Shown here one piece after another: positions 14,510 through 22,597 of a DNA stretch of 64,000 nt. Position 1 is the stretch's first letter; every line of letters begins with the position of its first letter. This DNA is from Obrimoposthia wandeli. Taxonomy: Eukaryota. The stretch lies in assembly GCA_977020255.1 (NCBI GenBank), contig CDROCS010002735.1, positions 62,001 to 126,000 of the forward strand, in the 5' to 3' direction. The position numbers and the translations under genes were made by a program. The notes below the pieces were generated by a model. The model did no database searches. It saw only the letters and a program-made list of their open reading frames with translations, and was not told where the DNA came from.

Positions 14510-15412
14510 ATGGATTGGAGATCAGTAAAATTTGACTGGAATCATGCCAGGTCTTTCTTGGTTACAGCCGAGGAGGGATCGCTTTCTGCTGCCGCAAGAG
14601 CTCTAGGGATGAGCCAACCGACCTTAAGTCGCCAAGTCAGCGCGTTGGAAAAAGATTTGGGAGTGGTATTGTTTGAACGTATAGGTCTAGGTTTAACAAT
14701 TACTCCCACCGGCCTAGAGCTGCTACAGAAAGTGCGCTTGATGGGGGACGCTGCCAGTCAACTCTCGCTGCTTGCCAATGGTCACTCTCAACAGCTTGAA
14801 GGAAATGTGTGCATTAGCGCTAGTGAGGTCTATGCGATATTTTGGTTACCTAAAATTATCGCAAAATTATTACTATTAGAACCAAAAATCAACATTGAAA
14901 TTATTGCGACTAATGATGCAAGTGACTTACGAAAACGTGAGGCTGACATTGCTATTCGCAACTTTAAACCTACCCAGCCAGAGCTAATAGCACGCAAAAT
15001 CAAAGACGTTAATGCTAAACTTTACGCTAGTCCTAGTTATCTCAAGAGCATTAATAAAATAAACGAGCTAGAAGATCTTAATCAGGCAAATTTCGTCAGC
15101 TTTGATAGTTCAGGTATGTTGATAAAAGGTCTTAGGGAAAGGGGTTTGAATTTAAACTCAGAGAATTTCAACCATTTAAGCGAGAACTTTATCGTACACT
15201 GGGAACTGGTAAAGCAAGGATTAGGCATAGGTATAATGCCGCAAGATATTGGCGATCTTGAACCAAAAGTGCAGCAAGTCTTGCCCAGTTTTAGCACTAT
15301 AAACTATCCAGTATGGTTAACTACTCACCGTGAATTGCATACAAACACCCGGGTTAGAATGGTGTTTGATTTGCTCGGTAAGGAACTTGCGAAGCCGTAT
15401 GCACAACTGTAA
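14510..15412 (+). CDS. LysR-family transcriptional regulator
   Basis: AEEGSLSAAARALGMSQPTLSRQVSALE HTH plus LysR substrate-binding domain; likely start MDWRSVKFDW at 14510. Confidence 0.95.
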   Translation: MDWRSVKFDWNHARSFLVTAEEGSLSAAARALGMSQPTLSRQVSALEKDLGVVLFERIGLGLTITPTGLELLQKVRLMGDAASQLSLLANGHSQQLEGNVCISASEVYAIFWLPKIIAKLLLLEPKINIEIIATNDASDLRKREADIAIRNFKPTQPELIARKIKDVNAKLYASPSYLKSINKINELEDLNQANFVSFDSSGMLIKGLRERGLNLNSENFNHLSENFIVHWELVKQGLGIGIMPQDIGDLEPKVQQVLPSFSTINYPVWLTTHRELHTNTRVRMVFDLLGKELAKPYAQL

Positions 15413-15415
15413 GCT

Positions 15416-15449
15416 ATTAGTTTTGTTGTCACTTACCCGATCGGAAATA
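15416..15449 (+). repeat. 34-bp direct repeat, right copy (just after lysR stop)
   Basis: ATTAGTTTTGTTGTCACTTACCCGATCGGAAATA. Confidence 0.85.
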
Positions 15450-15821
15450 ACACTTTTGTGAGATTTTACATTAGGAAGGATTAGGAAATTTCTGTAGAAG
15501 CTGAAATATTACATGTTCAATGATTTGGTGTATTTACTAGAGGGTTTAATATATGCAAATGAGAAAAAACCTTTAAGTTAGGTTGTTAATTTATCTTATT
15601 GAAATTTATATGTTATTTAATTTTTAATATCATTAAATCCACTAAAAATACGCCAATCTATTACATTGAATTTGATACTAAAAACCTGACTAACATTTTT
15701 ATATAATACCTCTGTACCATAGCGTTTCATCTATCAAAGTAACGATTCAATTCAGCTCGATTGAATAGGGCGCTAGTTATTAGTTCTCTCCTTATTTCTA
15801 CGTAATAAACTGTTTCTCCCA

Positions 15822-16226
15822 TTAGTACAGCTTATAATAAGTTGGATTGAATAAAGCCATATACTTTTTATCCAATACATCTTTGAAGCTGATACTAAGT
15901 TTTCGGTTGTCAGCAAGGAAGGTTTCAACCAATAAGTTTTCAAAACTGTGTATATTGAATAATGCATTTCTAATTGTGCGCATATATTTTAAAGATGAAA
16001 TAATTCCTGAATTCATCAGAATCCCTATATGATGAATTGGAACACTTAATAGCGCAGTTGCTTGCTCTGTATTGGCTTGAAAAGTGTCATGTGAGATTTC
16101 TCTATCAGTATTTCTAAGGCAAAAAGCTATCCAATTTTGATACTGTTGCTCAGGTAATTTTTTAAGTTGTGGGATAATTGGGAGAAGAACAGCATTGTTT
16201 ATTACATAGTGGTCAGTCTTTTTAGT
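15822..16226 (-). pseudogene. Gene remnant with an excisionase/MerR-like HTH pattern
   Basis: 134 open codons after an in-frame TAA (16227-16229), no ATG until 16016; segment NTEQATALLSVPIHHIGILMNSGII fits an AAxxLgV-turn-helix-G pattern. Confidence 0.35.
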
Positions 16227-16373
16227 TTAGATCCGATTACTAGCTGAAAACTTGCAAGGCATTCAAATTTAATGCACTTATTTTTTTAGCCTCATATGTA
16301 ATATTAGACTGAGCCACAGTCTTAAGAGTCGTCGTAAACTACAATAATAATTTAGAAGGTGCATAACAAGCTA

Positions 16374-16409
16374 TACTATGTCCAATACTCTTAAGTATTG
16401 GACATAGTA
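16374..16409. repeat. Perfect 16-bp inverted repeat with 4-nt centre, upstream of the recombinase
   Basis: TACTATGTCCAATACT-CTTA-AGTATTGGACATAGTA. Confidence 0.9.
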
Positions 16410-16453
16410 GTATATGTTGTTATACTGGGTTTTGCTTATAATTATGTGAATAT

Positions 16454-17734
16454 TTGGATTTTTATATGTTACAGATAACGCCTTTAATAAATACCTTTAC
16501 TGAAATTAGAAACCAGCGATCTTTGCTTAAACAGCAACAGCTTGCGACCGAATATCCTAGCGTGGCATCTTTTCTTAGTTCATTAAATGAATTACAGGAA
16601 ACTGCGCAAACTGAACTCATATTTGTCTTAGACTTTCTATATATTATGGGTCGAAAATCAGATGGTACGTTTATTCGGTTTCGCAATGAAATTGAACGTT
16701 GGTGTTTGTTTTGTTGGCAAGAGCGAAAAAAAGCTATTTTTAATGTTAACCGTTCAGACATTGAAGCTTATATTGAATTTGTTTGGAAACCCGATAAAGC
16801 TTGGATTGGACTTTCTGTACAGCAGCGCTTTAAATTAATATCTGGGAGCTTTCAAGCAAATCAGAAATGGCGTCCGTTTGTAGTTAAATTGCCAAAATCG
16901 ATGGTTAAGAAAAATCAAAACCACAACTTAAGCCCCGAGCAATATAGGCCTTCTCAAGAATCGTTAATTTCTACCTTCACAGCTATCAGCGTGCTTTATC
17001 AACACGCGCAAATGGAGGAAGTTTGTGATAAGAACTTTGTGCCAGTAGTAAAAAAGAGCTGTCCATATTTAGTTAAAGAGGTACAGCGCAAGACTCCGGA
17101 TACACTTAGTGAATTGCAATGGGAATACGTATTAGGCACGACCAAAGAAATGGCAGATGCAGATAGTCAGTATGAGCGTAATTTATTCATTATAGTGACA
17201 TTAAAATCTTTATATTTAAGGGTTTCTGAGTTGTCAGAACATGCAAAGTGGCGGCCTACCATGTCTGATTTTAGTAAAGATAATGATGATTTCTGGTATC
17301 TCACAGTGTTTGGTAAAGGCAATAAAATTCGTTCTGTTACCGTGCCACAAGCCTATTTAGAATATCTAAAACGTTACCGTACTTATCGACAGCTATCGGC
17401 TCTGCCCTCGCCTGATGAAGATTCTGCGATGTTAAATAAATTGCGCGGATCTGGAAATATGACCTCTCGTCAAGTACGCAGGATTGTAGAACAAAGCTTT
17501 GATTATGCGATAAAGGCTTTACAGAAAGATGGCTTTATTGAAGATGCTAATTATCTGATGGCCGCAACAACTCATTGGCTAAGGCATACTGGAGCAACTG
17601 AGGATGCAGGCTCTAGACCGCTCAAACATCTTGCCGATGAGTTGGGCCACGCATCATCAGAAACAACGGATAAAAACTATATACAAAGCAATATTAAGGA
17701 TAGAGCAAGAAGCGGCTTTAAAAGAAGTATTTAA
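16454..17734 (+). CDS. Tyrosine recombinase (site-specific integrase)
   Basis: Full catalytic set: R (YLRVSE), K (GKGNK), HWLRH, LGH, Y (DKNY); N-terminal core-binding region; ATG start probably 16466. Confidence 0.93.
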   Translation: MDFYMLQITPLINTFTEIRNQRSLLKQQQLATEYPSVASFLSSLNELQETAQTELIFVLDFLYIMGRKSDGTFIRFRNEIERWCLFCWQERKKAIFNVNRSDIEAYIEFVWKPDKAWIGLSVQQRFKLISGSFQANQKWRPFVVKLPKSMVKKNQNHNLSPEQYRPSQESLISTFTAISVLYQHAQMEEVCDKNFVPVVKKSCPYLVKEVQRKTPDTLSELQWEYVLGTTKEMADADSQYERNLFIIVTLKSLYLRVSELSEHAKWRPTMSDFSKDNDDFWYLTVFGKGNKIRSVTVPQAYLEYLKRYRTYRQLSALPSPDEDSAMLNKLRGSGNMTSRQVRRIVEQSFDYAIKALQKDGFIEDANYLMAATTHWLRHTGATEDAGSRPLKHLADELGHASSETTDKNYIQSNIKDRARSGFKRSI

Positions 17735-17832
17735 TACAGTCGATTTGGCCGTTGATAGATCATCAAGGTAGATTCCTCTAGCCCAGAACAATTAACTATG
17801 AATGCTTGCTAACCAAGAAAGGTTAGCGCCAG

Positions 17833-19737
17833 TTATTTCAGCTCATCAGAGGATACTACTCTTGCGCGGCCATTCGTTTTTGCTTGATATAACCGTTTAT
17901 CAGCGACTTCAAATAAAGCTTGCCAATCTCCACTTTCAATTTCACTTGAATGAGCGATGCCTAAACTCAAAGAGAGATGCTTAAGAGTGGATTTTTCATG
18001 TTTAATATCAAGTTTCTGGATAATTGACTGTATTCTATCGGCCACTAATTCAGCCTGAGTCATGGTGCTATTAACTAATAATACCAAAAACTCTTCCCCG
18101 CCATAGCGCACCGCTAAATCAGCATCATTGCGCAAGCTTTCTTTAATCGCAGTTGCAACTTTAGTAATGCATACATCACCTTCCGCATGGCCGTAGAAAT
18201 CGTTAAAGGCCTTAAAGTAATCTATGTCAGCCATAATTAATGCGTAATTTGACTCTATTTGCTGATCAATAAAAGGCTTTAGTTTTCTACGGTTATAAAG
18301 TCCTGTTAAAGTATCTGTTAATGATTCGTCTTTAACTTGTTCAAGTGTTTTAATTAATTGATGTTCTTTTTTAACATCAACAGTTATATCAATTAACAAA
18401 GCAAGTGTACTAGCTTTGTCATTCCAATCTATATCGGTAGCGAAAAAGCGGAAAAAGCATTGACCTATTTGCAATCTGTCTTTGTAGGTCATGGTTTTAA
18501 TAGCGATGAGGAGGTTTTGAGAAATAATGTCAGTATTGTTTATTGCATTTAGATCTAGCAGTTGCTGAGAATACTGATTGCTGTAAACAATTTTCTCTGC
18601 ACTGTAAATAATCACTGCTTGATTGGAGTTTTCAATGATCAGCATTAATTGCTTAGCGTTGGTTTTTATTTCGTTTTTTTGCTGTTCATTCTTAAGCATA
18701 TACTTAAGGATAGATTTTGCAATGATGCTAATTTCAGAGCCCCCTCGTGTTTCTTTTGTCAGCATTTTACGGTTCTCTTTAGTGCCGATACTTCTAGCTA
18801 GAACTATTAATCTTTTAGAGACGCTTTGGTGAAACAAATACATGAAGGCAATGGTAAAAATAGTGGTGAAGAGAACAATTGAGATTAATGCTTTAGTATA
18901 GTTTGATGAAATATTGTTTAGCTCTTGGGTGCCTTCCTTTACTAAGTTTTTAACAACATTAACTTTATCAAAAGAAATGGCGATAAGCTGTTCAATAATG
19001 ACGTTAGTTTGTGTTTCTAACACTGATAAATTGACCGAAATATCACCTTGCTCTTGAAGTACGGCAATAATCCCATCTTCGGGGTGATCAATGATTTCGA
19101 AAAAGCGCTTGTCGTTAATACCCATTATCCTTAATTGTTTAATTTTATTGATAATATTACTTCTGGCACGCTTAAATAAAAATGTGGTCGGGTAATCAGG
19201 GAGTGAGCGTGCTGATGTATAAAGCTGGTTAAGTTCACTTGTTTCACTCATTTGATGACTTTGTAATTTCATTAGCTTATTTATGTAAGCATCATCTAAT
19301 GCAATTATTTGTTTACGCAAGTTTAGTTTAGAATCAATAAATCTATCCGTTTCTAAGCTATAAGAATTAACAATAGGTAATAATTCTTTTGTCATCGCCA
19401 GCATTAGTTTACTGTATTTGTCCTTGGAAATATTATCAATAGCGAGTGTGATTTGATGTAATTCATTACTAAGCTCTTGCACAATAACCCTGTTTTCGGC
19501 GCTACTTTTGACGTGAGGAATTGCATCCATTTTTCTAAGCACGTTCTTGATTGCTAAATGTAAATTTGATGATTTTGATAATTCTGGAACCTGTTTTTCA
19601 GAGACAACAAGAGATAGGTAACTAAATTTATCCATCATCCAAAATGATAATGCCGTAATCATAAAAAGCGCGATTAGAATAACCAGCATACCGGCATTAA
19701 TTCTAACGGATATGCTAGCTTTCCAATTAGTTCTCAT
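17833..19737 (-). CDS. Membrane-bound diguanylate cyclase (TM-periplasmic-TM-HAMP-like-PAS-like-GGDEF)
   Basis: DTLTGLYNRR, DIDYFK..NDFYGH..GD and RYGGEEF motifs; two hydrophobic TM segments. Confidence 0.92.
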   Translation of the reverse strand: MRTNWKASISVRINAGMLVILIALFMITALSFWMMDKFSYLSLVVSEKQVPELSKSSNLHLAIKNVLRKMDAIPHVKSSAENRVIVQELSNELHQITLAIDNISKDKYSKLMLAMTKELLPIVNSYSLETDRFIDSKLNLRKQIIALDDAYINKLMKLQSHQMSETSELNQLYTSARSLPDYPTTFLFKRARSNIINKIKQLRIMGINDKRFFEIIDHPEDGIIAVLQEQGDISVNLSVLETQTNVIIEQLIAISFDKVNVVKNLVKEGTQELNNISSNYTKALISIVLFTTIFTIAFMYLFHQSVSKRLIVLARSIGTKENRKMLTKETRGGSEISIIAKSILKYMLKNEQQKNEIKTNAKQLMLIIENSNQAVIIYSAEKIVYSNQYSQQLLDLNAINNTDIISQNLLIAIKTMTYKDRLQIGQCFFRFFATDIDWNDKASTLALLIDITVDVKKEHQLIKTLEQVKDESLTDTLTGLYNRRKLKPFIDQQIESNYALIMADIDYFKAFNDFYGHAEGDVCITKVATAIKESLRNDADLAVRYGGEEFLVLLVNSTMTQAELVADRIQSIIQKLDIKHEKSTLKHLSLSLGIAHSSEIESGDWQALFEVADKRLYQAKTNGRARVVSSDELK

Positions 19738-21295
19738 CGTTTGCCTGATCTACCATTCTATTCATAGCAGGCTTTCGAATAGTTTGATGTGTTGAAAAAT
19801 AATCGGAAACAATATTCCAAATTCTACCTTTGTTAAATAAATTATTAATTGGCTTCTTGTTTTTAAGCATATAGTAGTCGTCTCCTCCTTTTAAAAAATA
19901 GTCTTGGAGAGCCATTGTATAAATTTTGTTTTCCACCACCGCTTTGCCTGCAATTTTTAGGGATTTTAATCGACTACCTACAGGTACTGAGGAGTCGTAC
20001 ACAGCCTTCATACCAGAAATATTGAGAAACCTGCCATCAATATGCTCTATTCTACTGACTGAATTTTCCATCATTTGTAGCAACTCTGTTCCAGATATTT
20101 CTATTACGACATAAAAGCCGCCGAAAGGAAATTCTCGTTGAATGTCGCCACGGGTAAATTTATACCCCACAGGATAAATAGCAGAGTTGCGTATTGATCC
20201 GCTGTTCAAAATGGCGATTTCTGTCTTTGCATGTGCATGTAGTGCATCTACAAATACGTTTGCCAATGCGGTTTCTCTCGTTCTGATTTGGTTTTTTTCT
20301 GTCGTGAACTTATCTGCAGCCGTAGCTATTTCTTCGTTGTACAAACTACCTAAGCGTAATTGATACTTTTTAATGAAATTAACTATTTCAGCATTAGCAG
20401 GATATTCATTAAGCTGCTCAATGCGCGCAGATATTTTCTGCGCTGCACTATAATCTATATCAACGACAACAGCATCACCGTCTTGGCCACCACCTAGTAC
20501 AATGGTTGTTTCGTTTTTGGTGATAATTTCATCCTTACCGTCAATAGCAACCAGTATTAAGTCAAATCTGTATTTATCCGCTATTGCTATCGCCGCTTCC
20601 TTTTTTAGATCGGTCATCAGAATTTTCATATCGGATGTTGCTTGCGCTGTAACAATTTTTTTTAAAACACTATCAAGATTTTCGATTTTAGCAAACTTTG
20701 GAGCATAAGTTATTAACGTTCTAGGACTAATGATAGAGGCTACTGAAATTGATTTGCCTTCAATATTGAATTGATAATCGGAGAATAAACCCTCGATTGT
20801 TGTATTGTTACGTGCATCCGTCATATTGCTACTAACGATTGGAAACTGAGCATCATGTGCCCTTAATGATAGAACATCTACATCATAACTAAGCTCTCTT
20901 TTCCCGACCGAATACAGAGACACATCCATGATATTGGCTAAGGATATAATATTACGTGCTTTATCAAACAGCGATATAGCGCTTGGTGAGAAACTATCTC
21001 CACCGTGTAAAAACAAAGTGTTTTTATTTTGATTAGCTCTTATCTTTTCTAGCAAAGAGCCTAATTGTGGAAAATGCGCCACTTCTTTGTCTAGCAAAAT
21101 ATCTGGCTGGTTTGAGGTATACACAATTGTCGTATTGGCAGCTAATGAGCATGAAAAAAGAGAAATCATAACAATGTTAACTATTTTAATGCTGTCTTTA
21201 CTATATTGTCGGCTCAATGCCGTTAGTTTTTCAATAATCAAGTTGGACTCCTGCATTGTTATCAATATAGCATCAGTTGAAGGTATGTCTAGCAA
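19727..21295 (-). CDS. 5'-nucleotidase-fold periplasmic protein with degenerate metallophosphoesterase site
   Basis: HGGDS, NSGSIR, FPFGG, GRFLNISG and GGDDY motifs; signal-like ISLFSCSLAA; GNHE replaced by GKRE; true start is probably downstream of 21295. Confidence 0.85.
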   Translation of the reverse strand: MLDIPSTDAILITMQESNLIIEKLTALSRQYSKDSIKIVNIVMISLFSCSLAANTTIVYTSNQPDILLDKEVAHFPQLGSLLEKIRANQNKNTLFLHGGDSFSPSAISLFDKARNIISLANIMDVSLYSVGKRELSYDVDVLSLRAHDAQFPIVSSNMTDARNNTTIEGLFSDYQFNIEGKSISVASIISPRTLITYAPKFAKIENLDSVLKKIVTAQATSDMKILMTDLKKEAAIAIADKYRFDLILVAIDGKDEIITKNETTIVLGGGQDGDAVVVDIDYSAAQKISARIEQLNEYPANAEIVNFIKKYQLRLGSLYNEEIATAADKFTTEKNQIRTRETALANVFVDALHAHAKTEIAILNSGSIRNSAIYPVGYKFTRGDIQREFPFGGFYVVIEISGTELLQMMENSVSRIEHIDGRFLNISGMKAVYDSSVPVGSRLKSLKIAGKAVVENKIYTMALQDYFLKGGDDYYMLKNKKPINNLFNKGRIWNIVSDYFSTHQTIRKPAMNRMVDQANDEN

Positions 21296-21621: not shown

Positions 21622-22410
21622 TTAATCGCCGTCTAAGATACGACCCAAACCGCCTAAAGCTGAGCCTTCTCCCTTGCTGTTTCCGCCATGACCAGCAGCA
21701 CTTTGAAAAATACGGTCAGCAAGACGTGAAAAAGGCATACTTTGTAGCCAAACAGTACCGTGGCCCGATAAAGTTGCTAGAAACATGCCCTCTCCGCCGA
21801 ATACCATTGATTTTAACCCACCGGATCTTTCAATGTCGTACTCAATGCCTGAAGTAAACGCCACTAAGCAGCCGGTATCAACACGTAACGTCTCACCCTT
21901 AAGCTCTTTTTTAATCAAAGTGCCGCCTGCATGTATAAATGCCATGCCATCGCCTTCTAAGGTTTGTAAGATAAATCCTTCACCTCCAAAGAATCCAGCA
22001 CCTAATTTACGATTAAACGTGATAGACACTTTTGTTCCCAGTGCTGCGGCTAAAAATGCATCTTTCTGGCAGGTGATTTTAGAGCCTAACTGATTCATAT
22101 CTAACGGTACAATGCAGCCAGGGTATGGCGCTGAAAATGCTACTCGCTGTTTACTTGACCCCTCGTTACTAAAGTGGGTAGTAAATATTGATTCCCCCGT
22201 TAGCTTGCGTTTTGCCGCTGAAAACAGTTTTGACATAACCCCTTCATCGGGTGTTGAGCCATCTCCCATTTTAGCTTCAAAACTAATATCCTGTTCCATA
22301 TAGTTCATAGCGCCAGCTTCAGCAATCACTGTTTCATTTGGGTCTAATTCAATTTCAACTAATTGAATATCGTGACCTATGATTTCGTAATCGACTTCAT
22401 GACATTTCAT
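21622..22410 (-). CDS. TIGR00266/AIM24-family protein
   Basis: [10 protein letters not shown] start, [16 protein letters not shown] and VWLQS motifs. Confidence 0.9.
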
Positions 22411-22597
22411 ATATAATCCTTTCAATGCTAAGCTATTAAATAGAGCGTTTATCAATCTTAATAATTTATAACATAATAGCACAAAATCAAATCAATTCTG
22501 ATAGTTGAACTGTCTCTTAACGACAGCAGGTCATTTTCCATTTGATATCGTTGGTTGTTTATCGCATTATTATTTTTTGAGTAAAAGAGTGGTTATA

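Follow-up and report, generated by a model that had tools for sequence, protein, structure and literature searches.

Few membrane diguanylate cyclases and sensor kinases have a known input signal. Some membrane sensors depend on a soluble partner in the periplasm, a logic shared by LuxP/LuxQ and TorT/TorS. In the latter, described in Escherichia coli and Vibrio parahaemolyticus, a periplasmic binding protein is paired with a hybrid kinase whose sensor is a double four-helix bundle (PDB 3o1h, 3o1i, 3i9w and 3i9y; PMC8050422). Partners of this kind also serve enzymes of cyclic di-GMP (c-di-GMP) turnover: for NspS/MbaA and other GGDEF/EAL proteins that depend on solute-binding proteins (SBPs), the listed partners are all classical SBPs and the sensors are dCache-like (Table 1 of PMC8050422). 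In Agrobacterium tumefaciens, PruR, a non-catalytic protein resembling molybdenum cofactor (MoCo)-binding proteins, binds an excreted pterin in the periplasm and controls DcpA (PMC11194511). PA2072 of Pseudomonas aeruginosa is a receptor for extracellular ATP that controls c-di-GMP, and its in-chain CHASE4 domain also hydrolyses ATP (PMC12625894). Here, we describe a pair of overlapping genes in a 64,000-nucleotide stretch of contig CDROCS010002735.1 (assembly GCA_977020255.1, Obrimoposthia wandeli; hereafter the window), one encoding an exported protein with a degenerate 5'-nucleotidase fold (the pseudo-nucleotidase) and the other a membrane diguanylate cyclase. An earlier note on this DNA, made by eye from the letters, had proposed that the first protein is a pseudoenzyme repurposed as a nucleotide receptor for the second.

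Our preferred reading is that the pair consists of a pseudoenzyme receptor and its membrane transducer, in which the pseudo-nucleotidase probably holds its ligand, most likely a nucleotide-like compound, without hydrolysis, and the cyclase reads this binding. That the pseudo-nucleotidase acts as an accessory protein or co-receptor of the sensor we consider quite likely; granted this role, a nucleotide or nucleoside phosphate is somewhat favoured as the ligand. Physical contact between the two proteins, the ligand class, the sign of the regulation and the absence of residual activity are what we infer from the comparisons below.

As in TorT/TorS, the gene for a soluble periplasmic protein adjoins that for a protein in which two transmembrane (TM) segments enclose a helical bimodular (HBM) sensor of about 270 aa (fold Z 16–18), and several relatives of the window cyclase carry the TorS domain order. 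Unlike in TorT/TorS, the soluble partner has a 5'-nucleotidase fold and not that of a type I periplasmic binding protein (Peripla_BP_1), the output is GGDEF and not HisKA-HATPase-REC-Hpt, there are no tor genes nearby and the sensor matches by fold only, without a significant sequence match. The window pair shares with PruR/DcpA a secreted, enzyme-derived, non-catalytic protein encoded in the same operon as a membrane c-di-GMP enzyme, an arrangement kept, for PruR/DcpA, across Proteobacteria (PMC11194511). It differs in that PruR has a MoCo-binding-like fold instead of a metallophosphatase domain plus 5_nucleotid_C, its ligand is a pterin, and DcpA is a dual diguanylate cyclase-phosphodiesterase with another sensor domain. 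The likeness to NspS/MbaA lies in a periplasmic ligand-binding partner encoded beside a membrane c-di-GMP enzyme. PA2072 is a precedent for periplasmic nucleotide sensing as an input to c-di-GMP turnover; unlike the window pair, it senses within the same protein, with neither a separate partner nor a 5'-nucleotidase fold. Our literature searches for a nucleotidase-like sensor partner returned no description of such a pair, and the word nucleotidase is absent from a review of periplasmic-binding-protein-dependent receptors (PMC8050422). The pseudo-nucleotidase, encoded next to a TorS-like sensor, most probably represents a type of periplasmic ligand receptor that has not been described before.

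The loss of the dimetal and catalytic motifs, which the earlier note had read from the strings SNQP and GKRE, the lack of later His ligands and a surviving GD, was borne out by alignment with UshA of E. coli K-12 (window residues are numbered in the 522-aa open frame). Eight of the nine catalytic and metal-binding positions are replaced. Among the metal ligands of UshA, D41 has become N62, H43 P64, N116 K132, H217 D229, H252 I251 and Q254 G253, and in the catalytic dyad H117 has become R133 and D120 S136; the metal ligand D84 alone is kept, as D100. The remnants of the N-terminal motifs read TSNQP (I), HGGDSF (II, with its Asp kept), GKRELS (III), MTDL (IV) and AIDGK (V). In a Pfam search, PF02872 was the sole match of the protein and PF00149 (Metallophos) was absent, and the NCBIfam matches (UshA, SoxB, NadN and others) all fell far under their cut-offs. 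The nucleotidase fold is nevertheless retained throughout both domains, as the earlier note had supposed. An AlphaFold2 model built from 25 family members (pLDDT 86.9) was compared by Foldseek, which gave the Thermus thermophilus structure 2z1a at E 5.6e-39 over 512 columns, and the full-length model also matched human CD73, E. coli c4898 (3ivd) and UshA, with E values ranging from 1e-34 to 6e-39. The model lies nearest to intermediate or trapped E. coli forms (TM-score 0.72–0.74), a proximity we deem uninformative on open versus closed states. The protein thus resembles UshA and CD73 (PDB 1ush, 1hp1, 4h2i; also 2z1a and 3ivd) in its two-domain architecture, its stacking pair, its phosphate arginines, its ribose Asp and its signal peptide, and differs from them in lacking all metal ligands but one and the His-Asp dyad and in being coupled to a signalling gene.

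The signal peptide noticed earlier is supported by a long basic n-region followed by a hydrophobic stretch and a predicted cleavage site (Table 1), and the N-termini of all homologues are likewise hydrophobic, with A/S-x-A at the end of this stretch. A lipoprotein reading of the string LFSC was ruled out: the Cys is not conserved among the homologues, and the pseudo-nucleotidase is therefore unlikely to be a lipoprotein.

In the C-domain pocket of UshA and CD73, the base is stacked between two aromatic residues and the phosphate is held by two arginines. The window protein keeps most of these contacts. The strings NSGSIR, FPF, GRF and GGDDY, which the earlier note had singled out, are present, and R379, R410, F429, G458, F498 and D504 of UshA correspond to R338, R369, F391, G421, Y466 and D472. 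Two contacts are changed in the close family: R375 of UshA is replaced by Lys and N431, which contacts the base, by Gly.

An exhaustive profile search extended these observations to a wider family, of which the best 150 cluster representatives (50% identity) were classed at the catalytic positions. Arg occupies the catalytic-His position in 72 of them, 28 are otherwise degenerate and 50 are canonical, so the degenerate family, with about 100 of the best 150 representatives, is not small. About 145 of the 150 retain R379, R410, F429, F498 and D504, and conservation of the nucleotide-contact residues extends to sequences with as little as 23% identity. At the old metal positions, D84, the last ligand left in the window protein, is often G or N in the wider family, and H217 becomes S, G or A. 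Mean column conservation among 25 family members is 0.65 in the N-domain versus 0.64 in the C-domain, and the peaks in the N-domain fall on what is left of motif II (HGGD..PS..S..D) and motif III (R-E-L-Y..D.L..R). Because the degenerate domain is as conserved as the C-domain and its peaks lie on these remnants, it is under selection and not decaying. In an alignment of 72 members (23–57% identity), the invariant or near-invariant residues are D98, R132, R325 (UshA R379), R356 (R410), D459 (D504), D337 and R500, together with the Arg that replaces the catalytic His. This Arg is invariant in all members paired with a sensor, and the Asn ligand is usually replaced by Lys. TRGDIQxE, R500, D98 and R132 are new, family-specific invariant charged residues and do not belong to the UshA substrate contacts. 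The former active-site cleft has been rebuilt and not abandoned, with cationic side chains at the old metal positions, and these would help to hold a phosphate.

The pairing of the two genes is conserved across orders and phyla, is exclusive and is not due to chance. A word-based protein search yielded 26 relatives with PF02872 only, and contig look-ups together with a scan of species-representative genomes yielded 16 distinct loci. At all 16, the next gene on the same strand encodes a protein with a TM segment, 250–290 aa and a second TM segment, at an offset of -26 to +107 nt and frequently with an overlap of 4, 11 or 14 nt, while the other flanking genes vary. These loci belong to Oceanospirillales (Oceanospirillaceae/Nitrincola, including the Osedax symbiont Rs1), Marinomonas sargassi, isolate AS21, Rhodospirillales, Temperatibacter marinus, Halieaceae and Deferribacterales. 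A metagenome scan added 80 loci, in which the nucleotidase homologue was classed by alignment to the family profile and the downstream gene by topology; it was seeded with a narrower alignment (A7), the broad alignment of 72 sequences (A6) being unusable as a seed. Among evaluable loci, a two-TM sensor adjoins the homologue in 26 of 26 with Arg at the catalytic-His position, in 0 of 27 with intact canonical N-H-D motifs and in 2 of 4 with other degenerate motifs. The co-occurrence anticipated in the earlier note is thus found in both sets, and sensor pairing in the Arg clade amounts to 42/42 overall. The nearest catalytic relatives from the first search (P0027 and P0035) have no paired sensor. 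As a separate observation, the pseudo-nucleotidase copy in a Pseudomonadales metagenome-assembled genome (L020:4971-5486) runs for only about 170 codons and stops 92 nt short of the end of the contig; a pseudogene or a faulty assembly could explain this.

The partners vary in their output. GGDEF is the commonest (21 of 28 metagenome partners), c-di-GMP being the usual output, and plain HisKA-HATPase kinases and hybrid kinases also occur, some of the latter (L018, L019 and L041 among them) with the TorS order HAMP-HisKA-HATPase-REC-Hpt. Two loci (L018:4653-10239 and L019:85-5604) encode, in succession, a pseudo-nucleotidase, a hybrid kinase of TorS architecture with Hpt and a REC-GGDEF response regulator; because the kinase is followed by this regulator, c-di-GMP is the end point there as well. 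In a comparison by hhalign, the periplasmic domain of the close GGDEF partners proved homologous to that of the distant ones (98.3%, E 2e-14, 300 columns), and five of the 28 metagenome partners match PF21689 at E<=1e-3. Pairwise distances of the two proteins correlate with r 0.975, a value reached in none of 5000 permutations. A pair from Rhodospirillales with a histidine kinase (L017) and one from Deferribacterales with GGDEF (L021) are nearest neighbours for both proteins. The sensor domain and its soluble partner thus remained together as the output was exchanged. At one metagenome locus, the partner of an Arg-clade pseudo-nucleotidase (L090:6023-6889, 289 aa) consists of a TM segment, a helical domain and a second TM segment, without a recognizable output domain.

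The sensor of the window cyclase resembles that of TorS in structure. The periplasmic domain, put at about 270 aa in the earlier note, comes to about 248 aa (residues 36–283). An AlphaFold2 model of residues 1–310 (pLDDT 86.1), aligned structurally with VIA-align, matched the HBM domain of McpS (2yfa_B) with Z 17.9 over 208 residues at 2.5 A and TorS with Z 17.9 over 207/229 residues at 2.3 A (3i9y), Z 17.0 (3i9w) and Z of about 16 for the TorS chains of the TorS-TorT complex. Unrelated helical proteins score Z of about 13–14 with this tool, a level that the TorS and McpS values exceed. With this sensor fold, and with the TorS domain order in the partners of some relatives, the analogy to TorT/TorS is closer than the earlier note had it. 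At the catalytic end, its description of an intact GGEEF and a shifted inhibitory site (RNDAD) also holds: GGEEF is invariant in the 19 of 19 inspected partner cyclases with a complete GGDEF domain, and throughout the close family the inhibitory site is RxxxD (R at -10, D at -6), one residue longer than the canonical RxxD. The canonical site lies five residues before GGDEF and is present in two distant partners, L005 and L021. The linker between TM2 and GGDEF gave no Pfam match in the window cyclase; that of a homologue (L012) gives PAS_8 at E 0.0014.

Hinge motion is known from UshA and CD73. In the mechanism that we propose, the pseudo-nucleotidase would bind a nucleotide-like ligand between its two domains in the periplasm, without hydrolysis, and in doing so would switch between an open and a closed form by such a hinge. 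The TorS/HBM-type double four-helix bundle of the cyclase would read this state as TorS reads TorT, and the signal, passing through TM2 and the cytoplasmic linker, would alter GGEEF-dependent synthesis of c-di-GMP. The pair offers a testable input candidate for a membrane cyclase, namely a conserved periplasmic partner whose pocket suggests a nucleotide-like ligand. Should this be borne out, the short list of periplasmic co-receptors, which have so far been SBPs except for a few such as PruR, would gain a new fold. The pair would also provide a clean bacterial example of an enzyme turned receptor and constitute a second, mechanistically different route from extracellular nucleotides to c-di-GMP signalling. 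Cultured carriers exist (Marinomonas sargassi C2222, Temperatibacter marinus and isolate AS21), which makes experiments feasible.

Several observations weigh against this reading, and different ones among them would favour different alternatives. HBM domains such as that of McpS bind small ligands, small acids among them, directly, and because of this the cyclase could, by analogy, sense on its own. The same property, seen through the fold match, would suit a pseudo-nucleotidase that is still an enzyme of altered chemistry, working with one metal or none and making or destroying a molecule that the HBM domain of the cyclase senses. In the close family, N62, D100 and D229 could hold one hard metal ion in an oxygen-rich site and so support residual or altered chemistry, and the CHASE4 domain of PA2072 both binds and hydrolyses ATP (PMC12625894). 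A surviving single-metal site was rejected because these three residues are not conserved in the wider family, where the leftover putative ligands vary as described above; the His-Asp dyad is lost in every paired member and Arg is invariant at the catalytic-His position. We consider continued catalysis improbable. Rather less improbable, while still unlikely, is a periplasmic accessory regulator that does not respond to nucleotides, in the manner of YfiR/YfiN or CpxP/CpxA, and instead follows an envelope, redox or other state or a non-nucleotide ligand. The pairing evidence says nothing about the ligand; with Gly at N431 and Lys at R375 in the close family, the ligand may differ from substrates like adenosine monophosphate; and the new invariant charged residues lie outside the UshA substrate contacts. 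A separate point against our own reading is that the window sensor domain has no significant sequence match that would assign it to TorS, HBM or 4HB_MCP: it has no Pfam match, a search of the PDB with its profile gave no match, and TorS_sensor_domain matches occur in 2 of 21 relatives, both sub-threshold. Against a regulator blind to nucleotides stand the stacking aromatics, the phosphate arginines and the ribose Asp, and a nucleotide-like ligand is favoured because these pocket residues are near-invariant, down to the most distant members, in proteins without catalytic machinery.

It is also conceivable, and in our view very unlikely, that the two genes share an operon without working together, the pseudo-nucleotidase being, for example, a binding protein for nucleotide scavenging or storage. 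The association of the window pair is a genomic one, and two orphan degenerate homologues have no neighbouring sensor; in these (L049:4465-5934 and L050), Gly stands at the catalytic-His position, H217 is kept and the gene lies between parC and a transaldolase gene. The correlation of pairwise distances shows co-inheritance and not contact, because common descent alone can produce such a value, and the Fisher exact test of the Arg against the canonical metagenome loci (p = 1e-15) ignores shared ancestry. What argues against mere neighbourhood is that the sensor accompanies every member of the Arg clade and none of the 27 catalytic homologues among otherwise varying flanking genes, that the output domain was swapped while sensor and partner persisted, and that related modules are covalently fused to other sensors.

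The fused modules occur in three long proteins among the degenerate representatives. Two of them, P0078 (1665 aa) and P0118 (1417 aa), begin with a signal or TM segment and carry a degenerate 5'-nucleotidase module of about 490 aa outermost, followed by two or three SBP_bac_3 Venus-flytrap domains, a TM segment, PAS and SpoIIE/PP2C; the third, P0145 (633 aa), looks like a fragment of such a protein. In these natural fusions, a related degenerate module thus forms part of the input region that signalling proteins expose outside the cytoplasm. The fusions belong to the otherwise degenerate class and not to the Arg clade, so that they would support the window pair by analogy. Like SiaA, P0078 and P0118 have PAS-SpoIIE/PP2C at their C-terminal end, and we know of no description of a 5'-nucleotidase-like or SBP_bac_3 input module for SiaA. 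The genes of the fusion proteins adjoin SiaC genes in Sia-type loci (L024:523-8254 and L025:657-6103), SiaC being next door in L025 and L026; just upstream in L024 lies a second SiaA-like HAMP-PAS-SpoIIE gene, followed by DUF6272 and SiaC. In P. aeruginosa, SiaA, SiaB and SiaC control the cyclase SiaD (PMC7647112, PMC8457831). We infer from this module a putative link of the fused relatives to c-di-GMP; no SiaD gene was seen in their loci, and the likeness to SiaABCD concerns these distant fused relatives, unlike the window pair itself. Two further proteins, P0052 (2537 aa) and P0156 (992 aa), contain 10 and 4 tandem 5_nucleotid_C copies, respectively, without an N-terminal metallophosphatase domain, and could be either arrays of modules that bind nucleotides or artefacts of assembly.

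A broader reading, which we put forward tentatively and hold to be possible without being the likelier outcome, is that the Arg-substituted pseudo-5'-nucleotidases form a widespread new class of bacterial extracytoplasmic nucleotide receptor. The protein would clamp an extracellular nucleotide, such as ATP or ADP, degradation products of DNA or RNA outside the cell, or a cyclic dinucleotide or oligonucleotide, and cationic side chains standing in for the metals would let it bind this ligand without hydrolysis. Its closed state would be relayed by transducers of three types, namely TorS-like cyclases, phosphorelays of the TorS type with REC-GGDEF at their end, and PP2C phosphatases resembling SiaA. 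If this were true, nucleotides in the environment would govern both c-di-GMP levels and whether marine bacteria live attached or free.

The two minus-strand open reading frames occupy positions 17833-21295 of the window, the upstream frame at 19727-21295 encoding the pseudo-nucleotidase and the downstream frame at 17833-19737 the cyclase (Table 1). For the former, ATG 21256 is the likely start and TTG 21217 an alternative, and TTG 21295 merely opens the frame. The 11-bp overlap recorded in the earlier note is present, joining the stop of the first gene to the ATG of the second, and the two genes overlap by -11, -4, -14 or -17 nt at related loci too; a two-gene operon with translational coupling is likely.

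Table 1. Features of the pseudo-nucleotidase and cyclase locus, with positions in the window.
Feature	Position	Strand	Remarks
Pseudo-5'-nucleotidase gene	19727..21256	-	exported, 509 aa counted from ATG 21256; open frame from TTG 21295
Signal peptide	21140..21256	-	long basic n-region, hydrophobic stretch IVNIVMISLFSCSLA, predicted cleavage between SLA and A; from translation
N-terminal degenerate metallophosphatase domain	20402..21136	-	UshA alignment
C-terminal 5_nucleotid_C domain	19862..20326	-	PF02872, aa 324-478, E 7.5e-31
Overlap of pseudo-nucleotidase stop and cyclase ATG	19727..19737	-	11 nt, ATGAGAACTAA
Membrane diguanylate cyclase gene	17833..19737	-	634 aa
TM1	19633-19689	-	aa 17-35, TM scan
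Periplasmic sensor domain	18889..19632	-	aa 36-283, about 248 aa, predicted all-helical double four-helix bundle, TorS/HBM type
TM2	18832-18888	-	aa 284-302, TM scan
Cytoplasmic linker	18322..18831	-	aa 303-472, possibly PAS-like (weak assignment)
GGDEF domain	17863..18321	-	aa 473-625, PF00990 E 1.2e-42
GGEEF motif	18088-18102	-	aa 546-550, intact; preceded by RNDAD
Hairpin between the convergent cyclase and recombinase genes	17807..17828	.	possible two-way terminator; consensus match only

Upstream, 326 nt from the pseudo-nucleotidase frame and on the same strand, lies a gene of the AIM24/TIGR00266 family (21622-22482, minus strand, E 4.5e-72). This gene is not kept beside the pair in L001 or L002, the two relatives whose flanks were compared, and a conserved third gene was rejected, the flank being occupied by AIM24 in the window (upstream), by DsbD in L001 and by sulfite reductase in L002. 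Promoter and terminator scans of the locus gave matches no more numerous than in shuffled sequence, and no conclusion on promoters is drawn. Downstream, a tyrosine-recombinase gene (16454-17734) converges with the cyclase gene. Just upstream of the recombinase gene, positions 15000-16500 of the window have a G+C content of 30–33%, against about 38–41% around them.

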